A stretch of DNA of 64,000 nucleotides from Thalia democratica (Eukaryota), in assembly GCA_965202585.1 (NCBI GenBank), contig OZ241826.1, positions 77,190,001 through 77,254,000 on the forward strand, in the 5' to 3' direction. Positions 26,056 through 50,322 of the stretch are shown here, piece after piece; the stretch's first letter is position 1; the number at the start of each line of letters is the position of its first letter. Both the position numbers and the translations under genes were made by a program. Under the pieces are notes generated by a model that saw only the letters and a program-made list of their open reading frames with translations, was not told the origin of the DNA and ran no database searches.

Positions 26056-26641
26056 AATATAAGTTAGTTTTAGTTAAATTCGCAGAAGTTGTTGGTAAAA
26101 TAAGGTTTGAAGAAACAAATTTTTGATAAATTTCGAAAAATGTGTTTATTTAACTTGTCTTTATTGAAATAAATTGTTAACTTTTAGTTTTATTTTTATT
26201 TAACTTAATTTTTTAAATACCACTATTATAAATGATTCCAACAAAACTGTTAAATTTAGCTCAGCGTTTTTTATAAGAATACTATGCAATATATTTAAAT
26301 CTTGAGTTTTTGAGTTTTTTTATTTTAAACTTGGAACAAAATTGTTTAACACTACTATCTTTTTATTATGAAAGTGTAGAAACTAATAATTTATTTAAAT
26401 TTTTTTCAAATACAAAGTTAAAAAAAATAAGCCTTTAATCTTTAAACTTAAGTTGAATAAAATCAAAATATCAAAGTATTTATTAATGTATACTTTTACT
26501 AAAACTTAATACTTTCAAATTGAAATAGTTACTATGGTTTTATATTAAATTAGTGTATATATTTCAACTAATCAAAAACCAATTTTTACAACTACAGCAC
26601 AAAACCATCTTGTAAATAAAAATCTATGACAAACACAACAA

Positions 26642-27373
26642 ATGATAACGCTGAAAAAAGATAACAAGAAGCAGTTGGACACAGAAGTCTTCACCAACTT
26701 GCAATGGAGCGATGACAGCAAGCTCTTCCACAAGTACAGGCTGGCAGTCACCACCTACATGGTCTCCATGATACTGAGGGACTTCTACTGCGGCTACTAC
26801 TCTTCCGTCTTCCACTACACGTGGTTCTTCACCAACTGGCAGATCCTGTGGATCACCTCCTACAACCTCCTGTCTCTTTCAACGTACCGGGCCATCGAAG
26901 ACAACAAACCTGTGAGCAGCAGGCACCTGAAGTGGCAGATGTACCTCCAGTCGTTCGGCTTCAACTCCTCCTTCACCGTCATGACGTTTTTCTGGTTGCT
27001 GCTGGCTTCTAGGACGGACAAGCCTCTGTGGTCGCTGCACAACTTGCACGTCCACTGCTTTTCGTTCTTGCTCATGCTGGCAGACGCGATGGTGACCAAG
27101 ACTCCGGTGCTGAAAGAGCATTTCGTCTACACTGTGTTCGGGGGCATGGTGTATACTTTTTACACATTTTTGTTGTACCAGTTCAGCGTTGTCACTGATG
27201 TTTACTTCTTTTTGAACTGGGCGAACCGTTCCACTGTTTTTGTTGGAATTGGTTTCAGCTTGTTTAGTGGCGTTGCTGGACATAGTTTACTGTATTTTCT
27301 GTTTAAACTAAGGTCAGTTTTACACAGAAAATACGTAAAAAAAGAAGCCTTAGCTAAATACGAGTTGGTATAA
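26642..27373 (+). CDS. Rolling-stone-like (FAR-17a/AIG1-like family) multi-pass membrane protein, 243 aa, single coding exon
   Basis: Uninterrupted ORF with strong C/G-ending codon bias and several hydrophobic helices. Motifs WFFTNW, LHVH..F.LML.D, P.LKEHFVY..FGG.VY..Y, VYFFLNW resemble the rost/AIG1 family pattern. Confidence 0.85.
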   Translation: MITLKKDNKKQLDTEVFTNLQWSDDSKLFHKYRLAVTTYMVSMILRDFYCGYYSSVFHYTWFFTNWQILWITSYNLLSLSTYRAIEDNKPVSSRHLKWQMYLQSFGFNSSFTVMTFFWLLLASRTDKPLWSLHNLHVHCFSFLLMLADAMVTKTPVLKEHFVYTVFGGMVYTFYTFLLYQFSVVTDVYFFLNWANRSTVFVGIGFSLFSGVAGHSLLYFLFKLRSVLHRKYVKKEALAKYELV

Positions 27374-30300: not shown

Positions 30301-33075
30301 TTCTAAAATTACAACGCCGGTCAGTCTGAAGACTAGAGTATTGAAAATGTTAACATGTCCGAAAAGATTATTAGTGTTTTTTATAAATGACACAATTTTT
30401 TTCTCAATCTCTTTGAAAGACTTTTTTTCCAAAGATGTTTTGTTTTTAAGTAAAAATCTAAACAACAACTTTTACCTAACATGTTTTACCATTTGTTTTC
30501 AGCAGTTACCTTGAAAACTCGACGTGAACCAGATTTTAAATCTATTGTATACACTTAACATGAAATAGTTTTACTATTCATATCCAATTAACAAATTTAA
30601 ACCTTGTACATCAAGTCTTAACACTGATTTTGAACAAATTTAAATATTTTCATTTTATAAAAAGTATATATGGTAGGTTGCAGTTTATAAATATACATGT
30701 TATTAGGTATATAAAGTTTTATAATTGCTCAAAACTTAATTTTAAGAGTTTCAAGCTAAAATTTTTGTCCCTAGACTTATAAAATACTTTACTGAATATA
30801 AATAGTATTAAATGGACTTTCTTATAAACCTAGTACCTAGAGTACCTTACGTAAGTTATAACCTCATACATATTTAATTTGAAGTATAGTATTTTCTCGC
30901 TTGAGTGAGTACTTAAAACACAAAAAAAAAAGCGTGTTCATGAAGTTATATATAAATATTCTCACTTTAAACTTAACTTTAATATATTAAAAGTAGATAA
31001 TATATCAATAGATGTACTATTTTCTGTGAAGTTGACAATAACAGCAAACAAGTATTTAAAAAGAATGTTCAAAATTTTGCAAATGATATGTTTGTGATTA
31101 CTTTGTTGTCCTACAACTGAGCTAAATTTTGTGTTTTAATGGTGCACAGTATTTAACTACAGTGATTTTTATTAATTAGTTAAAAATATGTTGTGTGTTC
31201 TTTAGTATTTTTGTACCTACTCTTTACATTTTTCAACAACACAACACATAAAATAGTTTTTTAAACATTAATTACAGAACGACTTTTTTTGATCAAAATA
31301 AAAAAAGAGTATTTTAAACACAATATTATTTGCCATAAAAAAAGTGCGTACCAAACTGTAAGTGCAGACTTGAAAATAATGTATTTCTAACATCGGGAGG
31401 TTACTTTTTACTTAAAATCTACATAACCTTTAACAGTAAAAAATCTGGTAGTAGAGTTGTTCTGAAATGGTTAAGTATTCTACCTTAAGAAGAATGTTAG
31501 AGAAAGGTTAAAAGCAACGTATGCCCTATCATTATAACGAATTTTAACATATCAAAACTAGTAGTCATAAGTTAGATACGTAGTTAGTGCCAATTTTAAA
31601 ATTTTGTTATAAAAACTTTTTTGTATTTGCATTCTTGAAGTATTTAAAAATATGTATTTTTTATTGAACGACAAAAAAGCCGTCAAAATAAACTGAAGGT
31701 TTGGTCCTAAGACCTGGTGATTGAAGAACCTTTCGGTTATGGAGTCGCACACCACTGATATCTTTTAACATCTTGTCAAGGACAATAAGTGCTAATCAAC
31801 ACTAAAACAAAAAATATCCAAATTTGAAATAGTATTTACTTATTAATGAACTTGTAATCAGTATTATTTTATTGATGCTCCTGCTTAAATTAAATTGGTT
31901 TGGTTAAAAGTATCAGCAAACTGTTGAACTGCCAATCTCTGATTAGAACTTTTATAATTATGACATGGTAAACATTAAAAAATCTAGTGTAACTAGAAAA
32001 AAACAGAGATGTAAATTTAATATTTTGCGGTTCATATAGTTCTACATCATAAGGTAAAAAGCTATAGAAAGTATAAAGTAGATTAAAGGTCATTTTACAT
32101 TTGAACAATTGAATATTTTTTATATATTTTAATTTTAATACCTGGAGTCTTACTTTTTTCAAAGAAACTACAGTTTTATACATTTAATTCGAAGCTAGCA
32201 AAATTTTAAGCTTTTGAGTAAATACTTTGGAGTTTTTCAAGTATAAAGCAATTTTAATACTTTTTAAGTACTCAATTTTTAACTGTTAATTATTACAACA
32301 TTAATATAAAATAGTGAAAAAGAGTGTGTCTCAAGTCAGCAAATAAAAAAAAGTAATTTTAATGAACAGCATTAAAATTTATATTAAGTTTGAAGTTGTT
32401 TTAAATCTAACTGTTAATTTTTTCCAATATATAATGTTAGTTATTTTAAAATTACAACTACTAAAAATGTTACAAAAATTTTACTTTATATACGCTATTT
32501 ATTAAAAAGTGAAAAAAGTTGGAAGCTTTTTAAAGAAAAAGTTTTATTTTCTTAAAAAAATAAAATAAAACAAGAGTAATCATCATTTTATTTCAGAACT
32601 TTAGCTGAAAGAAAATAAAAAATAATTTTAAAGACTTATGTACTTAATCCATTAAGATACTTCTGATTCAACAAGACATAATGGTTTTTCATTACCTGAA
32701 AATATAAAACAAATGTAAAGTCCTTTTTTTTATGTTCAATCGTTGAACTTCACACTTTTAAATTAACTGTTAATTAATAAAACTTATAAAAAACCGTAGA
32801 ACAACTATTATCTAAACTAAATAAAGACTATGGAATAATAAAATAAGAGTCAGTGATTTAAAAGTACGTAAAATGTCTTTATAAGGAGAAGTTTGTTCAA
32901 TCTTGATGTTTAAATTGAATTTAGTCACTATAATGTATAGAAATGAACTAAAAATTTTCCTAATAAAACTTTAAATAGATATTAAGTATACAGTTTTCGT
33001 AAAAATAAATTAGAAAAAATAAATTTGCTTTTGTTGTGTTCTTTTTTGTTAATTAAACCAAAAAAAAACCTTTTG

Positions 33076-35843
33076 TTAGTTCTCTACTACAGTATCTGCA
33101 TATATCTTATTATAGTCAACATTATTATCAACGTAGTTTTTCTTTGGATCTGCTAAATCAATATAAACTGATATTTTACCATCTTCAGAACTCGTACACA
33201 CTGTTTATTTATGAACATTTTTAGGCTTGAACGTGAATTTCTTTCGAAAATAAACAAGAAATAAGAAGAACAAAGGTTAATTTTTTATTTATAAGTCTTT
33301 TTTTATAAGTTATTTTATAAGCCTAATTTAGAAAATTAATGGAATGTAAAATAAATGCAAATAACTTAAACAAAAAATATTATTTTAGAGAAGTTTTTAT
33401 ATAATTGTATACGAAAAATCTGCTTTAAATCACACTATTTTTTTAAATTATCTATTTCAAATAAAAACTTTTAAGTAGTTGTTATACTAAAATTTATAGA
33501 AATTGGTTAAAAGCAAAAGCTTCGCGTGTAAAAAATTAAAAATCTACAGATACTAAAAAGTAGTTATAAAAAATCAAAAATATGTAATTGTTTACCAAAT
33601 ATAAAAGTTTATGTTTCTTCTAGTTTATTTTATTGTTACTAAAGTAAGTATACTTGAAACTTAAAAGAAATCCGATATAACAAATTGTTTACTCTAATAG
33701 AGATCTTCATTTGTAATTGAAACTTTAATCAAGTAAAAATTAATTATAACTTTTTTCTTCTTGAATTTAATTTGAGAACTTTTAAAAGTGTTACGCTTAA
33801 AGCGAACGTCATGCAATATTTAAAAATAACGAACACTAACTTTGTTTACTTTGATCTTCTGCATCAACATAAACTGCTTTTGTATCATCTTCAGAATTTG
33901 TATCAACTGTTTATTTATTAAATGTATTAGTCTTTAAAGTGTTTGTTTTAGAAAAGTATATGAGTCTTGTGAAGAACAATATTAAAAAAAAAAACGCTTT
34001 TTAAAGGTCTTGTTTAAATCCTTAAGCTAAAAAATTATTTTATAAGTCTAAATTAGAAAATTAATGGAATGTAAAATAAATGCAAATAATTTAAACAAAA
34101 AATATTATTTTAGAGAAGTTTTTATATCATTTTATACGAAAAATCTGCTTCAAATCACACTATTTCTTTAAATTATCTATTTTAAATAAAAACTTTTAAG
34201 TACTTGTTATACTAAAATTTATAGAAATTGGTTAAAAGCAAAAGCTTCGCGTGTAAAAAATTAAAAATCTACAGATACTAAAAAGTAGTTATAAAAAATC
34301 AAAAATATATAATTGTTTACCAAATATAAAAGTTTATGTTTCTTCTAGTTTATATTATTGTTACTAAAGTAAGTATACTTGAAACTTATAAGAAATCCGA
34401 TATAACAAATTGTTTACTCTAATAGAGATCTTCATTTGTAATTGAAACTTTAATCAAGTAAAAATTAATTATAACTTTTTTCTTCTTGAATTTAATTTGA
34501 GAACTTTTAAAGGTGTTACGCTTAAAGCGAACATCATACAATATTTAAAAATAACGAACACTAACTCTGTTTACTTTGATCTTCTGCATCAACATAAACT
34601 GCTTTTGTATCATCTTCAGAATTTGTATAAACTGTTTATTTATTAAATGTATTAGTCTTTAAAGTGTTTGTCTTAGAAAAGTATATGAGTCTTGTGAAGA
34701 ACAATATTAAAAAAAAAACGATTTTTAAAGGTCTTGTTTGAAAATCCTTAAGCTAAAAAACTTAAAAATTAAAATGAAGAAACTAATAATGTACAGGTTT
34801 TTATTTAATTTGAGTATCTACAAATCCTGTATTGGTTCATTAAAAGCATGAGAAAGAAAAATTAGTTTAATAGCTAAAAATTATTTTTTCAATTTTATAG
34901 TTTACTTAATAAACATATCATAAAAAAACTAACTGTGTTTAGTTGGGGGATCTGGCAAAGTTTCATAAAAGTTTGTTGGAGTTTCTGTAAATTAAGATAC
35001 TTTATTTTTTGAAAAAGCATTGACTTTAATTTAAGTTAATTAGTAGATTTCAGTTTATGACAAAAATTAGTACTACATTAGACTTTTTTTTCTGTCAATT
35101 ATAAAAGAAATGTGACCTAGCTGTATCTAGAATTAAGTTTTTAAAGTAAAACATGTTTAACTTTTTTTTACCAGTTAACTTTTTTGTTTAAAACTAAGTA
35201 AAAATATTTACATACCTTCCATTTCTATCCTCTTTTTGCTTTGTTCTGTTACGTTAAACAATTGCATGAAAGTATTATTTATGAGTTTTTGTTGTATATT
35301 TTGTATCTATTAGGGCTATTAGCATATCAAGATAAATTTTAAGAAAAGCTCATAAACTTAAAACAACAAACTTACTCGTCATAAAATCTTCTTTTTTACT
35401 GTCTTCTGTAAAAACAAATATAAATAATGATTTAAAAAACAAGCTTTTAGTTATAAAAAAGCTATTAAAGGTTTTAATTTAAATTTACAAGCTAGTATAC
35501 GATAAAATGTTTTATTTTTTTAAACAGAATGACAAGTTTTTTTTTACTATGAATCTTACTTATACATTAAATACCACTATAGATCAAAACAATTCAAAAC
35601 TTTAAAGTTATTAGAGACAAATGAGTAAAGTATTAATAAAAATTTATTTTGAACTTAAACAAGTTGCTATTTTTCTATACGTTTTTAGTTTAGGTTGTAT
35701 CAAAAAGTATACTTACTTGAACGTATTGTTTTTAGGTCCAGTTTCTTACAAATACAAACGACAAAAATAAAAATTAAGTTAACTGCAGCATAAGCAAACA
35801 ATGCTATTGGTATATAAATCATAGTTTGACTTTGATAATATAC
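33076..35843 (-). CDS. Unannotated type I single-pass receptor: TM exon plus microexon-encoded Tyr-motif cytoplasmic tail (3' part of gene)
   Basis: TM exon 35843-35717 (CAG|...|GTAAGT): VYYQSQTMIYIPIALFAYAAVNLIFIFVVCICKKLDLKTIRS. Phase 1-1 microexons 35405-35376 (DSKKEDFMT), 35245-35216 (QSKKRIEME), 34631-34575 (YTNSEDDTKAVYVDAEDQ), 33906-33850 (DTNSEDDTKAVYVDAEDQ). Terminal exon 33200-33076 (CTSSEDGKISVYIDLADPKKNYVDNNVDYNKIYADTVVEN*). All junctions keep the frame open. Confidence 0.75.
33311..34760. repeat. Recent tandem duplication, about 725-bp unit, 2 near-identical copies (plus a diverged partial copy at about 33130-33310)
   Basis: GAAAATTAATGGAATG begins at 33331 and 34056 (period 725), and the units align nearly base for base. 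33130-33310 aligns with the last third of the unit at lower identity. Confidence 0.95.
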
Positions 35844-35960
35844 CTGATAAAATTCACAAATTAAAATAGATAGTTTTCAACTTACACAAGGTAACTATTT
35901 TAGTACTATATAACTTTAATGAAGTTGTAAAATATTTTTTGTCTTTGTTTGAGTTTTTAC

Positions 35961-36377
35961 CATGTTTTGAGATAATCTACTTTGAAGTTCACTTTGTTTT
36001 CAAAGAGACGTTTAATTTCAGTTCTATACACACAATTTTTCATTTATATGATTAAATAATTATTTATACTTTGGAGTAAACTAATATTTACCAAGAATTT
36101 ATAAACCTTGCACTAAAAAAATCCATACTTTGTAAAATAACAAAATGCTCGCAACATAAAAATATTACTTTGGTTTTGATTTAAGTTTAAAAACTTATTT
36201 CTCTCACTCTCTTTCTTCAACTAATAAATTAAAATAATAAATACGGTCAAAAAGGTATTTGCTCTTTCTATCTTAAAATAAAACGGTTATTTACATCGCA
36301 AATAGTTGACAGAATATAAATACTTTCCACATAAGCACTTTGAACAAAGCACAAAAGAGCGTATTTAACTGGAAGTG
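35961..36377 (-). CDS. Candidate ectodomain exons of the same receptor (divergent FN3-like)
   Basis: Phase-compatible chain: 36377/36368-36295 (..KYALLCFVQSAYVESIYILSTICD|GTAAAT), 36220-36129 (LKKESERNKFLNLNQNQSNIFMLRAFCYFT|GTATGG), 36023- (KTEIKRLFENK, donor uncertain). The L.(P).T.Y.F.LRA-like spacing suggests FN3 strands E-F. Boundaries are tentative. Confidence 0.4.
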
Positions 36378-39337
36378 CTTACTTAACAAACTGCTAAAAA
36401 AGAAATTGAACACAGAATTTATTAGTTGAAATTGCGTACTCATGCTAAAAAGATGGTAGTTATTTTAACTGAAGTGTTAAACAAGAAGTTGTGTAATGTG
36501 CAATGGGTTTACTATTGATTTTATTTATTTTAGCATGAATATAAAAATACTTTAATCTAACCAACAGTTAAGAGTCACAACCAAATGCTTTCAAAATGCA
36601 TCTTAAATACTCAGTGCTTTATAAATGTTATAGTTGGTTTTTTAAATTAGTTTGTGTCTTTTTTTAAAGCAAACTGTTGTGCGTATTGTTACTTGTAAAC
36701 AATTTTTTAAACAATTTGTTATTCAAAAAAATTAAAACCTAGTATATAAAATATCTCATTTAAAAAAATATTTGCTCTGAGCTTAGTTTATATAAAACTT
36801 AAACATTCCTTTATTAATTTAATTTAAAAAAACATTTTTTTTGCTTTCAAAATATTATCTAAATCATACCTATTTGTACTTAATTAAATATTAAAACTAA
36901 AGTAATAGTTTACTACAATATACCGTATAGTTAGATCTAATTTTTAATTAATTGTAGCAAAACGTAACAACAAATTTTCAAAAAAATGAATACTAAATAA
37001 AGTTTTTAATAATAAGCAAACTTTACTGTTGTAAGAGATGACTAATAAAGATTTTGCGTAACTATTTTACTGCTTTATGACTCACCCGAAGCAACTGTTT
37101 GTTATTTTTACTTTGAATAACAACTTTATCCTTACTTAATATACATAAACTTGTGTTACTGCTTTTAATAAAAAATGTAACTAATTTGTTTATTTGTTTT
37201 TTACAACATTTTACTATCAAACTGTGTATTTTTGACACTTTATTGAGATTTTACATATGTTTTTGATTTTTAACACAGGAATCAAAACTAATTTCAAGAT
37301 AAACGTTTTTTTGAATCTTTTTTTATAAATTTCACGGTTTCAAAAACGTATTAAAAAAAAAACATTATTATATCAATGTTAAGCGAAGTTTTTACGAACA
37401 AACTTTTAAACAGCTCACAGCATAAATCAGATTTTTAGATAAATAAAATGAGCCAGAAAAATGAAAGACATGTATAGGAACATTAAAATTAGGCGTATCG
37501 TTAAAGAAACAGTTTAATAGAAAAGCAAACAACTAGTTATTATTTTTCTCTCCTACTCTAAAACTAAAATAACTTACAGTCAAATACTTATGAAACAGGA
37601 AAGTGATACATTTTTTATTTCATTTCAAATCTAAACATCTTGGAAATTGATAAAGAATAAGAAAATAAAAATTGAAGCTGATCATCTTAAATGAGGTACA
37701 TATCGCTGCTGAAGCTAACTTAAATAAGATTTTTATTAAAAACAAAACAGACGCTTTCTTTTAGATTATAAATTCAAAGAAATCTAGTGAAAAGCTGAAA
37801 ACTAGTGTTTTATAGGTTAACTATTTTGAAAATTTATCATCAGTTGTTTTGTTCAACATTTATTTAAAAAATCATGTACACAAAAAAAAAAATTTAACTT
37901 TTTAACAATACAATTTAATTTTTTTTAATATTTTTCTTGTAAATAACCTTACACTACTTCGCAGTAAAGCATCATTTCAACTACACACAGCTTTTGAATA
38001 GAGTTAATTTATGATTTTAATACAGAAATAACTAAACATTTACTAACTTTAAATTGTACAGTTTAAACTTTTTTTAATCTATATATTATTTTATTTTACA
38101 ATTTTAAAAGGAAACCAAAAATTAACTAAAAAAACTTAAAAGTAGAACTAAACTTTCTGTAGTTTTTTACAACTTCGTTAACCGTTCACACTTAATAAGT
38201 TTCAGCTAAGACAATATTTGTATTCTTATGTACGTATTTGTAAATAAAACTCATTCTTCCTTATTAGGTTTGATCAAATTTGTTTTTTTCTAATTTTTAC
38301 TGCCTAAAAACTAAGAAAACCTTTAGATTGATGTTACTAAATTATCTTTTAGAAAGGTAAAAAAACAAAAAAAAAACAAAGTATATATATAAATAATAGT
38401 ATGAGCAAATATAAACTTGTTTTCAATTTATTTAAATAAAGGCTAGCAGACTTTTATAAATAAGGGCTAATTGATCGTACTTTATAAAAATGTCTTCAAC
38501 AGGCAACAGTTATTTATTAAAATTTTATATATTTATAAAACGGCACTAAATTTACGCAAAAAATATGATAAAATATGCAATAATAAAGCATTAGTTAATA
38601 ATAACCAAGTTAAGAGCTTAATTCAAATTATTTACGACAAAATACGTTTATTTTTTATTTTTATAGCATATTTTTACCTGAAATCTTCATCTCATCAGCA
38701 TATTTCAAACTTGACTATTTTAATTAAAAAAAATGACGCTCCTTGCGTTTTCGAACACCTAATCGTAGAATATAGCTTTCAGGTCCGCTGTTTGCCGACC
38801 ACTGAGATAAAACAACTGAAGGTCGTCAGTCAAAATAATAATATTACGTCAATATATTGGTTCGATTTAAACATAACAATTATTTTTAGTTTTAAAGTTA
38901 TTTCAAATGTTTATCTTTTATAAAGTAATGATACATTAAGTTTCTAATCTAATTTGAAAATTAAATACTCGTACAATAGTATACTTTACTGTCCAGTTAC
39001 TTTTATTCTAGCTTGACTCTTTTATTGTTCTGTAAAGTTTTGTTTACTTTTAATGAGTAGTGTTTTGTATTTTAAATAAAAGTTTTGATAACGAAGACGT
39101 AAACTTAAGTTAAATAAACAAGTTTGAAGACTAGAAAAGAGAAACTCTAAGCTGCCGAGTCACAAGCAGCTGTTAGTTCACGTTCTAAAAAGTATGGACG
39201 ACTTTTTGAAGTCTTTGGACGATTCTTTGGAGCGCAATAAGGATAATTGGTTAAATTTACGAGGATTGGAGAATGTTGATGAGAAAACGTGCGACTTTTC
39301 CAATGGAAACATCGAAGTATCCTGACATGGCATAAAA

Positions 39338-39362
39338 GTCACGTGACAAATATTTATTGGCC
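39338..39362. promoter_or_regulatory. Palindromic E-box (GTCACGTGAC, USF/TFE-type) next to a CCAAT box (ATTGG)
   Basis: GTCACGTGAC at 39338-39347 and ATTGGCC at 39356-39362, adjoining a GC/CpG-richer block at 39160-39330. Confidence 0.4.
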
Positions 39363-40747
39363 AAAAAAGTTTTTTACAATCTACCTTTAACCTGATGTAA
39401 ACATACCCAATGTCTACGGGCTAATCATTATACTAACTTTGATACATTTTAAGCGTTGTTTGGTATTATAAAATATTGTTTTAAAGTAGGTTTTAAAATA
39501 TTTTATAAAGATAGTTTTTTCATTATATTGTTAGCTTCTAGATAAAACTTAAATACACTTTTATAACTGTTTTTTTATTATTATTATAATTTAATTTAAC
39601 TGAAAATGTTATTAAATATTATAAACTATCTTTTCAGCTTTTAAACTTTTTAGTAAACAAATAGCTTCTAGACATGTCCAAGCTAGTAAAAATATCAAAA
39701 AGTAATGCACAAAAGCGTTTTGAAAAAACCATTACAAAATCTTCTATAGGGAATTCTAAACAAGGTAATTGTAAAACAAAATACTTCTTTTAGGCTTGTA
39801 TTATAGCAAAGAATAATATAACCATCTGACCTATTATCACAATGATCTGACTTGTGGTCATTATGGATAAAAAGTCTAATATGGTTACGAGGGATAAAAG
39901 ACATCATAGGGGAGCGAAATATGGAAATTTAAATGTTATAATTTTATTGATGCGTTACTAAAAACTAAGTAATTGTATGAATGCAATTTCATTCATTTTA
40001 ATCGACTGTATTTTACTTTTTGTTTAAATTACTTGTTATAAGTTTCTAAATTCTAAATACATAAATTAGGTCAGAAGGCTTTCTGTTCTTAATTCTGTTA
40101 ATCTATTTATTATCTACCACTATTTTTAAGACTTTTAGATTTTATAAAGTAGTAAATAAGTATATAGAAAAGGAAATTTGTAAAATATAAATAAACTATA
40201 AATTCGAAAACTAATAAAATTAGTTTTCGATCTTGACTAGATTAACAGCAACTTAAGAATACTTTAATCTAGATATTAAACACGATTAAAGCTAATACTA
40301 CTTTTTATAACACACAACGATACTAACACAATCACGAATGAGTAGTCGGTGTTGGGGGAGAAAACCCGTTTAGTAAACGAAACCCAGGGGAAATCGGAGT
40401 AAACTGGATAAATCTGGATCGACCTCTTCGAAATGTGGTGAACTAATGACCCTGAACTAGATAACAAGGGTGCTCGATTAGTCTTGTCTTCGACACGATC
40501 GTAGTAAATGACGTAACTAGAACGGTGATGACGTAATAACTTTTCGCTTTTTCCCAAGAAACAACCCGAAAAATGTTGTTTAAGTAACTTAGTAACTTAA
40601 CTTGACTTTCGGTACAAAGACCAAAACAAAAGCCGTCGCGTCCGCGGGACTAGTGCCTATATGCCAATAATTTGAGAGAATCGGGTTTTTTTCTCGGCAA
40701 ATAATTTATTTTCCGCGGAAACTTCGAAGAATTAAAAAAACAACATA

Positions 40748-42420
40748 TGGAAAAATTTTCCAAGGAGGAACTGTGTCATATATTTTAGAAAGTCGGTTAA
40801 AATGACAAATTCATAGGGAAATTTATTATTATTTAGTGTAAGGAAATTCAAATAAAGGACTACGTCCTTACAATAACAAAAAACAAACAAAATGTTTTAC
40901 TAAAAACATAAAGATTTCAGTAAAATTAAAAGAAACTGTTGAACAAGCTTATACGACTGTACAAACTTTATAAATGTTTTTTAGATGAAATACAGGTTGA
41001 AGAAAACAAATTAGCGGCAGCTTTAAAACAGAACAAGCTGATGTTAAATGATGATGATAGTCTACAAGTATCCGACTTTATAAAAAACAAAATAACTAAA
41101 GATAACGTTCTTGTCTTTCACAATTTAGCAGAACTTTACAAACTACCTACTGTTTCTGAGTCATCTTTTATGCTTATAAAAAATGTTTTCCAATGGTAGT
41201 TGAAACTCTAAGCTTTTTACACAAATACTTTGGTCTTGTTGCAAAAATACTAAGTAGTTCTGGACTTAAAGTATTTAATGCAGCAAATGCTTGGTTAAAA
41301 AACACAACAGTGAACGTAGCAAATATGCAAAACAACGGTTACTAGAAGTCGACTTTCTATGTTGTCAGAACACGCATTAAATTATATTTTAGATAGAACT
41401 TTTTCATTAATGGGAAAATATGAATGTTTTTAACATAGTGAAAGTAGTTTTGTCAGACGAGACCAACTCATATCATAATTGTAGTTATAACCACACAAGT
41501 AGGTATTGTAACCAGAATAATTTCAACGTACTAATTTTCGGTGGATTTGATACAAAACGAGCAGCTTGTGTGGCAAATGTGCGTAAAGCTGATAGAAGCA
41601 ATCTTAAAAGTGTAGATGTTCTTTCTAAAATGAAAACGGAGAAAAAAAACGATTTGAAACTTGTTGTTTGAAATGAGAAGTATGTAGTCGGTTGTCGTTA
41701 CAGTGCTGGTAATTTGTTAAAAGTAGTTGAAAAATATTCACCTTTCACTGACACGTGGAATGAGGTAACAAATATGGTTGATGAACGTCGGTCTTTTTGT
41801 GTTTATCCATTCATAGAAAGTATATTTATCGTTATTGTAACTATAATGGTTATAATTATGCAACACCAATCACTTCATGTTTACAGTTTGATACAAAATA
41901 CCAAAGTTCGAAAAAGGTTTCTGGAATGATTGTAAAACAATATTGTCCAGCATGCGCAATTTTTCAAGGAAATGTTGTTGTTTCTGGTGGATACGATACT
42001 AATGGACGTATGCTAAACTCAGTAGAATCATGTGATATTTTTGCAGACAAATGGTCGCCAATGCCTAACATGGTTTGAAGTATAAGTAGTCATAGTTTAG
42101 TTGTTGTAAAAGATAAACTGTTTGTTATTGGTCGTTTAACATACACTTGTGAAGTTTTTGATAATGACAGTAAGAATTTTCCTGTTTAGGAATCCACTTT
42201 TACCTGTAACAAGTGTGTGGCAGAATTTTGTTGTTTTTAGGAATCAGCCTTTTATTTCCTTTAACAAGTGTGTGGTAGTTGGTTATAAAGTTCTAATATT
42301 TCAAGAGCATAGATCATTGGTAATTTGTTAAGATGTTGATAAAGATGAATGGTTTGAAGAAGCATACAAAGTAACGTGGCACCTTGTCGGTTTTTCCTGT
42401 GCGAAGTTACCTTCGTATTT
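40748..42420 (+). pseudogene. Intronless BACK-domain/Kelch-repeat protein pseudogene
   Basis: Fragments in shifting frames: IKNKITKDNVLVFHNLAELYKL, CFPMVVETLSF..GLVAKILSSSGLKVFNAANAWL (BACK), TSRYCNQNNFNVLIFGGFD, VEKYSPFTDTWNEV, CAIFQGNVVVSGGYD..LNSVESCDIFADKWSPMPNM, DKLFVIG, CAKLP (Kelch). Several in-frame stops and frameshifts, and a small internal duplication at about 42175-42275. Confidence 0.9.
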
Positions 42421-45400
42421 ACACATTCTGTTAAAACAAGCTATGTACTGAGATTTGCTTTTTACTTAAATATATATGATACTGTAATGTAAATAATGTA
42501 ATATTTATAAAAACAATTAGTAATTTATCATTTTGACTGTTGCGTTTTTATTTATTTCTAAACAAAAGTTGTAAATTTTAATAAACATTCTTTGGTATTA
42601 TGTTTGAAATTGCTTTGAAGTTGTAAATTTTTATAGGAATTGTTTATGTAAGTTATTTAGAGTAGGTTGGGCAATACTTCTAGTTGAGGGAACAAATGTA
42701 GAAAAAGTTAGTTATCTGTGAACATGAGAATTTCGAAACCTATTGGTTCACGAAAGTTGTGGAAGTGTAGTGCATTAAATTAGAATAAACGTTAAATAAA
42801 AGAGTATTTCTATTTATTTTGTTAGATTTCTATCTAATTTGGGCTTAAAATTTACAAAAAAAAAGTGTTAGATTTAATAAATAACTTCAGCGACAAAAAT
42901 CACTTAAGGTTGATATCTTAAAGTTCAATTATATTTACATATATAAAATATAAAAGTTTTTTACGTTTCAAAACTATTTGCTGAAATATTACATTAATAA
43001 TAGGTCATTTAGTAAGTAATATTATCGTACAACACAACTTCATTTTACTTTTTAATAAATAAGCTAAAGGCTATGTTACAGTAAGAGATATCAATGATGT
43101 TATGCACGTACCTTGAATTCCAAGCAAAACGCGTACCTAAGTAAAAATTTACTTTACAGGTTACGGATAAACGCTGCCCTTAAAAGAGCGATTAACAAGT
43201 AGTACTTAATGATTTAGTTAAAAAGAGTTAGGTTCTAGTTTGTTTTAGACTTAATAAAAAAATAACTTGGTATACTTTTATGAATCATAACATATTAATG
43301 TTTTTTTAAGTAATATAAGTAAACATATTGTTTTTCTCAAAGAATTTTTGATAATACTCAAATTCATAAACTTTTAAAGTGCTAATCATATCGGTTATTT
43401 ACACGCATGTGCGAAAAAATTGATACACGTAAATTAAAATAAATAATAACAATTTTTTTCTATAATTACTAAAAGTTAGTTGAACTTGTAAAGTAAGAGT
43501 TTGAGTTGTCGTGCACTCAAAGGACTTTAAAACTGGTTATATTGTAAAATGCTTATTATTCGGTGTTTGTTAAACAACTTAGTCGAAAATCTTTAATGAA
43601 AATTTCAGGTTGAAACAGAACAAGTGGTAAAATGCCCTTATTTTACAATTTAACAATCTTTTTTTTTAAATTGAAACAAATTTCACTTGGTGATTCGTAT
43701 CCTGCCTGCTTTATAAGTACGCTACCAGCCCCTACTCTATAGCTGTTCTTTATAAATGATTATAAACTATTTTTTACATATAAACATGTATTTTTATGTA
43801 AAACATAAAATAATTACACAGTTGTAGTTATTACTTTTCTTCTAATTATAACTTTAAATAATTTAAAAAAAATATTAGTTTTTAACTTCGTCACGAGTGT
43901 TACATGTTGATTATTTGTATTAACAAAAATAAGTCAATATAAAATATAAATATAACATAAATATAACTTATACTTTAATGTTATAAAATTATGTATTATA
44001 AAATATAAAGGTATGAGTGCGACTTGCACGTCCTTCAAATATTTTAGTCCTGCTGTCCACAGCCTAAATAAAATATTTATTATATAAAGTTACTATATAT
44101 TATTTACTGACTAATTTGAGTCTAAAACAGTTGCCATCATAAATAATTTTGTTAAATTAACAGGGTTTATGAGCTAAATTTGAATGAAAAATCTCTAAAA
44201 AACACTTTAAGCTAAAACAAGCCATACTTAAACAGCCTATTTAAATACTTAAATGAATGTAAATAATTAATTATAAAAGTACCAATAATGTGGCCAGTCC
44301 ATTTCTTTATCATAACTTCTTTATGTCTTTGTAAAGAAAAATGAACAAATTTTTATAGAGTAAGTAGAATAAAAAAACAAAAAGTTTAAAATTTTAAACG
44401 TATAAATTTAGTAAGTTTAAATTCAAGTCTAATTATAAAATATTTTGAAAGTTTAAAAATAAAGTCTAAATTTTTTTTTGAAAAGTTAGGTACTAGTACT
44501 CTTATTTTTTATCGTCTTCATTTTGATTTCCCTATTTTAACTTTTATAAAAAAACACATTTACACTTAAACAAAAAATACTCAATAAACTACTTGAAAAA
44601 GTCCCAAGAACGTCAAATATAAATCTGGTTACTGTACGTGCTTTTTTTTAAACTTAAAATACCATGCCAGAATGTCTTTTAGCTAGCTTCGCAACATTTA
44701 CAACTATGGTTATATTGAAGTTCAATAACTGAGCCATAACTATAAACTTATTTAATTTCAATAATTGTAATAACATGAAAACTGTTTAGCTTGTTTGTTT
44801 CTTTTATAAAACTCTATTTATATACCTTAAGATCATATAATTAATTAAAAAAAAGTTTTACTTAAAGTATCATATCTTAAGTTTATTTTAAAATTAGCAA
44901 GTTGACTAAAATATCAATTTTATTAAAACTTAAAATTCTGATAAATAAACTGTTATTTTAATAAAATTTCATTAATTTTTTATTGTTGCTCATTAAACTT
45001 GTTTAACTGATTATAATTTAAAACTAACTATAATGCTAAAATATTAAAGTTAAGTTCAGCTGCTTTAACATTGAAATCAAACAAAAGTAATGAATTAAAA
45101 TCACAAAACAATTTCTATAGTTGATTTACTCTACATGAATTTATATAGTAAAAACAGAAATAAACTTACGTAAAAATATTGAATGTCAATAAAATGTCTA
45201 TAAGGTTACTACTCGCTAACGAATTCAACTCCGTTGCGCCCATCATGTAAAACAATTTAAAACAGTAAAACATTTTATTCCGTTACGGTATGTTTAATTT
45301 AAGAGAGATAGTACTTCAGTGATTCATACTAATGAGATTAGTTATTCTTTCTACCAAACTAAAATAACTTTGCAAAATTTAGACTGGTTTTTTAGCCGAA

Positions 45401-49115: not shown

Positions 49116-50322
49116 TTAGAAAAACTCTAAAGGGTTTTTGTAATTGAACAACCTGGCAAAGTAGTTTTGGGTGGCGATGTGCTCAAGCTGACTTTGTTGG
49201 TACTGCGTCATGTTGTAAGCTGGTTGGAGAATCTGATTCGTTTGCAAGCTGCTGATTGCTGGATATGAAGGTTGTTGTGACGTCATAGCGTGAGTTTGAA
49301 GGTGGGAGAGAAGTTGGTCGGAAGTGGAAAACTTCTTGCCGCAAGTGACGTTATTGACCATCCAGTTGCAGACGTGCTGAGAACTTTTCAGCTGATCTTC
49401 GATTGTCTTCATGTAGTAATGCATTGGATTCATCATCTGCATTTGAAATTGTGCTTGGTGATTAAAGTTATTTTGATAATGATTATGATAAAAGAGGTTG
49501 CTGTGTAAAAGCTGGTTGTTTTGGTGCAACATGGAATAAAGAGAAGCATTTCCGTAATTAGAATTGCCAGAAAAACCAGTAAACTCTGTGTTTTTCACAG
49601 TATCTTTCCTCACAGGAGTAAGCCTCAGTTTTTTTGATGAGCTAACATTTTCATTTGATGAGTTTTGACTGTTAGGGCGCTTTGAAACTTTACTGGCCGG
49701 TCTGTCAATGCTAACATTTTCGTCAGTCGGTTTATTAAATGATTTCGCCGTTTTTGTTGGTGATACGTGTTCAGTTTTAGGTGTCAGGGTACTTTTATTA
49801 GCTTCTTCTTTTCTTTGCTCTTTTTGCTGCCGACTGAATTTTTCTTCTTGTTGTTGTGTTGCAGGTGATGGGTAAGTCGCAGTGGCAGCCGGTCTGTTGG
49901 TTGAACTGAGGTTGCTTTCAATTGCTGAACATGATTGGACGAGCAGCGCCAGTGGAGACTGCTTTAAATTGATCTGCCAGAACAATAATGTATTAAAAAC
50001 AATGACTTACACAAATATAGAAAAAACGATAGATACGTTTTTAATACTTACTTAATAAATGTTACTATTTTTAAAACAATTCTTTTTGTCATTAAAACTA
50101 AAAAAAATGTTTAAAATTCTTAATAATATAAAAAAAGATATATGCTTTACTTTTTTCGGAAAAAAAAAGCTTTGCTAAAACAAAAATACAAAAACTTGCT
50201 TTAGTTTAAACACAAACTTTTAGCTTTAAAAAAAATTATATAAAACTTTTGTTTACCTGCGGTGTGTCTTTCTCGGGTTGCAAGTATTTGTTAAGAAAAA
50301 TATTTTCCTGCTTAATTGACAT
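49116..50322 (-). CDS. ZNF503/703-like: NET/NocA-family (ZNF503/ZNF703, Nlz, Elbow/Noc-like) zinc-finger protein, 2 exons, 307 aa
   Basis: Exon 1 50322-50257 MSIKQENIFLNKYLQPEKDTPQ|GTAAAC; exon 2 49973-49116 begins INLKQSPLALLVQSCSAIE (Sp motif). Single atypical C2H2 finger HVCNWMVNNVTCGKKFSTSDQLLSHLQTH. The intron sits between YLQP and SPLALL, as recalled for NET genes. Confidence 0.93.

Follow-up and report, generated by a model that had tools for sequence, protein, structure and literature searches.

The DNA analysed here (the window) is a stretch of 64,000 nucleotides (nt) from the pelagic tunicate Thalia democratica (GenBank assembly GCA_965202585.1, contig OZ241826.1, positions 77,190,001 to 77,254,000 of the forward strand), with a base composition of 25% GC. 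Coordinates below count from its first nucleotide. At 35843-33076, the minus strand carries a candidate gene whose seven exons have canonical AG/GT borders and share a single open frame. The first exon would encode a transmembrane (TM) helix, and the others would contribute to an acidic tail that contains several tyrosines. The parts of this candidate, which include a terminal open reading frame (ORF), are:

35843-35717, minus strand: TM exon (127 nt; acceptor ttttatcag, donor gtaagt; phase 0 to 1), the putative first coding exon
35843-35717, minus strand: content of the TM exon, VYYQSQT-M-IYIPIALFAYAAVNLIFIFVVCIC-KK..., comprising the ATG, the TM helix and, next to the membrane, CxC-KK
35820-35822, minus strand: candidate start codon, 21 nt past the acceptor, with A at -3
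35748-35819, minus strand: hydrophobic segment IYIPIALFAYAAVNLIFIFVVCIC, 24 residues, followed by KK (35742-35747)
35405-35376, minus strand: micro-exon 1 (30 nt, phase 1-1), (K)DSKKEDFMT, acceptor tttttacag, donor gtaagt
35245-35216, minus strand: micro-exon 2 (30 nt, phase 1-1), (K)QSKKRIEME, cag / gtatgt
34984-34934, minus strand: 51-nt exon (phase 1-1), (E)TPTNFYETLPDPPTKH, cag / gttagt; its GC of 0.37 is the maximum in the chain
34631-34575, minus strand: 57-nt exon, copy A (phase 1-1), YTNSEDDTKAVYVDAEDQ, cag / gtaaac
33906-33850, minus strand: 57-nt exon, copy B (phase 1-1), DTNSEDDTKAVYVDAEDQ, cag / gtaaac
33200-33076, minus strand: terminal exon (125 nt), cag acceptor, (M)CTSSEDGKISVYIDLADPKKNYVDNNVDYNKIYADTVVEN followed by TAA; a 41-codon ORF

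The TM exon begins in phase 0 and ends in phase 1, and every internal exon is 1-1. Since the phase-1 exons are symmetric, the skipping or duplication of any one would leave the frame intact. Micro-exon 35405-35376 has the best splice context in the chain (tttgtttttacag / gtaagt), and the 51-nt exon codes for ETPTNFYETLPDPPTKH, including NFYETL. Both 57-nt exons have an alternative, equally good GTTAGT donor that would extend them to 66 nt in the same phase (ending at 34566 in copy A and at 33841 in copy B). If all seven exons were joined and translation began at the first ATG, the product would have 151 residues, with a predicted tail of 124 residues, a net charge of -14 and eight tyrosines, of which five stand in Y-[VIA]-D. 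Among the tyrosine-containing peptides are EDDTKAVYVD (twice), SVYIDL, VDYNKI, NYVD and IYAD. An initial annotation had described the locus as a single-pass receptor whose tail is assembled from small exons. The exons, borders, splice dinucleotides, phases, peptides and tyrosine motifs that it listed are all present on the minus strand; its six exons are correct, while a seventh in-phase exon, the 51-nt exon at 34984-34934, had been overlooked. The nonamer that spans the 3′ end of the TM exon and the donor G (acgttcaa/g, 35726-35718) recurs at about 33237, in the intron just 5′ of the terminal exon, which could be chance.

The feature that sets this locus apart is the coincidence of phase and splice sites. 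We counted chains of non-overlapping, same-phase, symmetric, open exons within 2.6 kb, each with a CAG acceptor and a donor agreeing with GTAAGT at no fewer than three of positions 3-6. The longest chain at the locus comprised six exons (five after removal of one 725-bp duplicate copy, described below), compared with two on the opposite strand of the window. In 300 third-order Markov simulations of 64 kb, the longest chain was two in 91, three in 165, four in 41 and five in 3, and never reached six, giving a P of about 0.01 per 64-kb strand for a chain of well-flanked exons. In the interval from the TM exon to the terminal exon, hardly any candidate that combines a CAG acceptor with a reasonable donor lies outside the chain, and the main acceptor-donor pairs are all 3n long and open in the required phase. 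Strong donor motifs are also concentrated there: four lie within 670 nt (GTAAGT three times, GTATGT once), against 0.4 predicted from the 39 per 64-kb strand.

Composition differs between the putative exons and introns (GC 0.294 versus 0.206), and G favors the first codon position. Counts at positions 1/2/3 are 10/0/0 and 11/0/0 for the two 57-nt exons, and 16/3/4 (16 of 23) for the terminal exon, whose ORF ranks second among 346 ORFs for this bias. The same-phase 3n chain is the sole outlier of the window, and it looks more like a spliced coding unit than do the window's other AT-rich stretches.

Part of the chain arose by duplication, with two further features on the map:

33310-34760: tandem duplication of two 725-bp units, each with one 57-nt exon and its downstream intron
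33138-33309: third partial, older unit of the tandem series

The two full units are 96% identical in a 300-nt core family and 90% identical over 919 aligned nt, and the 57-nt copies A and B differ by a single base. An older copy (76% over 106 nt, E=6e-15) consists of the first 57 nt of the terminal exon and roughly 45-110 nt of the intron upstream, which bears out the proposal that the 57-nt exons are paralogous to the 5′ part of the terminal exon. The corresponding claim for the two 30-nt exons fared less well. By hand count, 14 of their 30 bases are identical, and in A-rich sequence this does not demonstrate paralogy. We found no further copy of the locus in the window beyond its own tandem units. 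A dispersed repeat or transposon was also considered as an explanation and was ruled out, since the window holds no copy outside these units.

How far should a chain of this kind be trusted? The strongest competitor to a gene is that there is none: a TM-like ORF, mini-exons and an acidic ORF would have come together by chance in AT-rich intergenic DNA, with the tandem duplication mimicking a repeated module. We regard this as a serious possibility, with rather less than an even chance of being right.

Taken singly, several parts of the candidate are ordinary for this DNA. Each strand has about 700 open phase-1 mini-exons, 27-60 nt long and bounded by AG..GT. With a score of 2.59, the best 21-residue Kyte-Doolittle window of the TM segment ranks seventh of 1680 stop-free stretches, of which 65 reach a score of at least 2.0, and the antisense of the terminal exon also encodes a TM-like stretch (rank 8). 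The consensus of ITIMs (immunoreceptor tyrosine-based inhibitory motifs), (I/V/L/S)xYxx(L/V/I), from which an inhibitory function had been proposed, is matched by 10.9% of the tyrosines that random translations of the window contain. Given this background rate, the two matches among the eight tail tyrosines (SVYIDL and VDYNKI; 0.87 expected) are unremarkable and do not support the term inhibitory. Both the TM helix and the ITIM matches thus lie within chance expectation.

The substitutions between paralogous exons do not favor a gene either. Between the 57-nt exon and the terminal exon, one codon change is synonymous and ten are non-synonymous. A random substitution model predicted 1.3 synonymous changes and left the frame free of stops with a probability of 0.52 after 13 changes. 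Identity is also barely higher between the paralogous exons (75%) than in the adjacent intron (65%). Since the 1:10 pattern equals the neutral expectation, it gives no signal of purifying selection and the comparison is uninformative; the pattern suits non-coding DNA as well as it suits fast evolution. The idea of a fast-evolving immune or allorecognition receptor therefore finds no backing in these changes, nor in the homology searches that follow.

Further observations weigh on the same side. The candidate exons sit in a gene-poor GC desert, a 7-kb stretch (31820-38691) in which none of the 100-nt windows reaches a GC of 0.34, unlike the confident exons elsewhere in the window, where GC reaches 0.4-0.6. 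Islands of higher GC bound this stretch on both sides (31651-31820 and 38691-38880). The codon-position bias of G could derive from a decayed GAT/AAT-type simple repeat. Moreover, the chain statistic was applied to a locus already chosen, in the initial annotation, for those very traits, and a chain of five in about 1% of simulated 64-kb strands means that many chance chains, dozens, are expected genome-wide.

Searches by HMMER, JGI, Pfam and ESM Atlas recovered no homologue, family or transcript-derived protein. An exhaustive HMMER search with the terminal exon against 1.84 billion representatives returned two repeat-protein matches only; both were judged spurious, as these proteins agree with the query through a DGK..V..LDLSDP-like low-complexity repeat. 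Scans of the JGI metagenome and metatranscriptome contigs gave 42 pattern matches with a three-module alignment and 473 with the TM ORF, none of which was confirmed, yet the same collection contains the transcript of a neighboring gene (see below). Pfam recognized no domain in either the TM exon or the terminal exon; recognition in ESM Atlas was low and offered no lead. Over the window as a whole, neither Rfam nor a tRNA scan gave a match. The weight of these negatives is limited, as proteins of this genome lie outside the collection and close relatives are sparsely sampled.

Against chance stands the joint pattern. In the real window no other chain stands out, a length of six occurred in 0 of 300 simulations, and the main well-flanked candidates are without exception 3n long and open in the required phase. 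Independent features coincide with it, such as the ATG right after an acceptor, the helix followed by KK and a terminal ORF in phase, as do the GC contrast between exons and introns and the G bias at codon position 1. On balance, we put a real coding gene at this locus at close to an even chance. That it is a lineage-restricted small minus-strand gene (35843-33076) encoding a TM adaptor is our preferred, unconfirmed reading, which we hold tentatively and at a little under even.

If there is a transcript, it need not encode this protein. The locus could be transcribed and spliced as a non-coding RNA, or translated from other exon combinations or frames, since a cluster of splice sites supports splicing and not coding. 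Across the 57-nt and 51-nt exons, two frames out of three contain no stop, with an alternative frame over the 57-nt exons reading FIQILKMIQKQFMLMQKIK, and the missing sign of purifying selection would suit this account. The phase-1 frame alone, however, is open through seven exons and ends in a 41-codon ORF, and the bias of G toward codon position 1 belongs to this frame only. We consider this alternative improbable.

The preferred reading of a coding gene then raises the question of whether the TM exon is the first coding exon. The codons 5′ of the ATG (VYYQSQT) are open in frame as far as the acceptor, which formally leaves room for a coding exon upstream. Over about 5 kb upstream we found neither a signal peptide nor an exon for an ectodomain, and the minus-strand stop-free stretches of 35876-41000 contained no Pfam domain and no immunoglobulin (Ig)- or Sushi-like features; beyond them, too, no minus-strand ORF with such a domain or an Ig-like character turned up. 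The sole strong donor just upstream, at 35885, closes a frame of three codons. Going upstream, the first features encountered are a Kelch pseudogene on the plus strand and a zinc-finger ORF ending at 49119. Across ten upstream ORFs, Pfam found the Kelch motif of this pseudogene alone.

The Kelch remnant occupies 40930-42450 on the plus strand, with BACK/Kelch-like coding sequence and a Pfam Kelch_1 match at 41785-42075. Two in-frame TGA codons (41669-41671 and 42076-42078) and a change of frame near 41790 interrupt it, and it is probably a pseudogene. On the minus strand, 296 codons are open at 50006-49119; this stretch abounds in Q, N and S, has one C2H2-type finger (CNWMVNNVTCGKKFSTSDQLLSHLQTH) and may resemble NocA/Elbow/ZNF503-type proteins.

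A gene on the other side of the locus offers a precedent for the start. At 26642-27373 on the plus strand, inside a GC-rich island, lies an intact ORF for a multi-pass membrane protein of 243 residues. Its relatives carry PF21534, and the exact protein is not on record. One relative, 97% identical, is found on a 901-nt JGI transcript contig (sample 3300019144) with no flanking DNA. The transcript starts exactly after a genomic ACTACAG at 26597, 45 nt 5′ of the ATG, which fits a trans-splice acceptor or an acceptor in the 5′ untranslated region (5′UTR). Since the transcript begins right after an AG, first exons of the form acceptor-then-ATG exist in this lineage. Spliced-leader trans-splicing is established in tunicates. 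We take coding to begin in the TM exon because no domain or ectodomain exon was found upstream, the donor at 35885 closes only three codons, the ATG lies 21 nt past an acceptor and the neighboring gene sets a precedent.

With the ATG at 35822 as the start, the exoplasmic part may be about three residues long (M-I-Y). As KK..K..R follows the helix, the positive-inside rule places the tail in the cytoplasm. The initial annotation is thus upheld in part: a single-pass protein with an acidic, tyrosine-rich tail grown by exon duplication fits the locus, whereas the term receptor lacks an upstream ectodomain exon. If the gene is real, the most defensible guess, by analogy, is a TM adaptor similar to LAT and PAG.

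That these exons are the TM segment and tail of a larger gene, an FcoR-like or other ITIM receptor with signal-peptide and ectodomain exons further upstream, is the least likely of the alternatives: the phase-0 start of a TM exon open to its acceptor allows for it, and AVYVDA and EDD...VY loosely resemble the splice-swapped ITIM, hemITAM and [A/D]VYxxV motifs of FcoR (PMC12582321), but the empty 35876-41000 stretch, the identity of the upstream neighbors (the plus-strand Kelch pseudogene and the zinc-finger gene), the three-codon frame at 35885 and ITIM matches at the level of chance all argue against it.

A model that accommodates the TM adaptor reading is as follows. The acceptor of the first coding exon may receive a spliced leader or a short 5′UTR exon, and translation would begin at the ATG 21 nt on. 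The product would expose about three residues, cross the membrane once, carry a possibly palmitoylated Cys-x-Cys-Lys-Lys and extend a 124-residue acidic tail with no recognizable domain into the cytoplasm. An early duplication would have derived one module of this tail from the terminal exon, and the recent 725-bp tandem duplication would have doubled it again. By analogy with LAT, NTAL and PAG, the protein may act as a membrane-anchored scaffold whose tyrosines, when phosphorylated, recruit SH2 proteins, with no binding of a ligand. A bolder version, which we think unlikely, is that a non-vertebrate chordate has its own orphan palmitoylated LAT/PAG-style adaptor, in which micro-exons for tyrosine docking sites are amplifying and are perhaps included or skipped to set the number of sites.

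If the preferred reading holds, a pelagic tunicate has a lineage-specific membrane adaptor that has been caught adding tyrosine modules by exon duplication, a small and clean example of how a signaling tail grows. Such a protein would be a candidate partner for receptors without signaling motifs, as proposed for the Botryllus fester proteins. The orphan LAT/PAG-style version would imply that the adaptor design arose independently outside the immune cells of vertebrates. If the gene is not real, the locus is a caution: TM helices, ITIM matches and frame-preserving mini-exons arise readily by chance in DNA of 25% GC, where the joint pattern of phase and splice sites alone is informative.

We compared the candidate with known tyrosine-based signaling proteins. 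In ITIM-bearing inhibitory immunoreceptors, a signal peptide and a ligand-binding ectodomain precede the TM helix, and neither was found at the candidate locus. Among tunicates, the comparison is with the fester co-receptors (FcoR) of Botryllus schlosseri, whose tails contain ITIM, hemITAM ([E/D]3xYxxL, a single-tyrosine form of the immunoreceptor tyrosine-based activation motif, ITAM) and core tyrosine motifs ([A/D]VYxxV and YxxI/L/V) (PMC12582321). The motif content varies by allele and alternative splicing, which makes FcoR3/4 the nearest tunicate precedent for motif swapping and a precedent for the suggested tuning of signaling by exon inclusion (PMC12582321). The candidate tail has YETL, YIDL, YNKI and AVYVDA. 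FcoR proteins differ in having Ig-like and Sushi ectodomains, and AVYVDA departs from the second core consensus in having A, not V, at +3. The hemITAM spacing also differs, as SEDGKISVYIDL has four extra residues, and in both EDDTKAVYVDA and SEDGKISVYIDL at least four residues separate the acidic cluster from the tyrosine.

The ITAM adaptors DAP12, FcR gamma and CD3 zeta are likewise small, single-pass proteins with a minimal ectodomain and YxxL/I motifs, and the YETL and V-Y-x-D-L of the candidate presumably resemble half-sites of the FcR gamma and DAP12 ITAMs. Unlike these adaptors, the candidate has no acidic residue (D or E) in its TM helix and no exoplasmic cysteine for dimerization. The canonical ITAM, YxxL/I-x(6-12)-YxxL/I, is not matched, as YIDL(123) and YNKI(140) are 13 residues apart and YETL is followed by YTNS.

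The closest likeness is to the transmembrane adaptor proteins (TRAPs), which are defined by an extracellular part that is short, a single TM helix, cysteines next to the membrane and a tail that has many tyrosines but lacks an enzymatic domain (PMC3342071). The candidate differs from LAT, NTAL/LAT2, PAG/Cbp and LIME in several respects. It has no sequence similarity to them (Pfam; HMMER with the terminal exon) and is shorter (151 residues), its tyrosines are mostly in Y-[VIA]-D rather than in YxN Grb2 sites, and its juxtamembrane sequence, VVCICKK, has CxC at the helix end instead of CxxC, the TRAP palmitoylation motif. Its predicted layout is nonetheless the same, with a stub, a single TM helix, cysteines and a tail. 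In silico, and provided that the ATG at 35822 is the start, the exoplasmic part is short and the helix single. The 124-residue tail has no Pfam match to an enzymatic domain and contains eight tyrosines, several with acidic residues close by, compared with 9-10 in LAT, NTAL and PAG. We regard the likeness to TRAPs not as family membership, but as an analogy of design.

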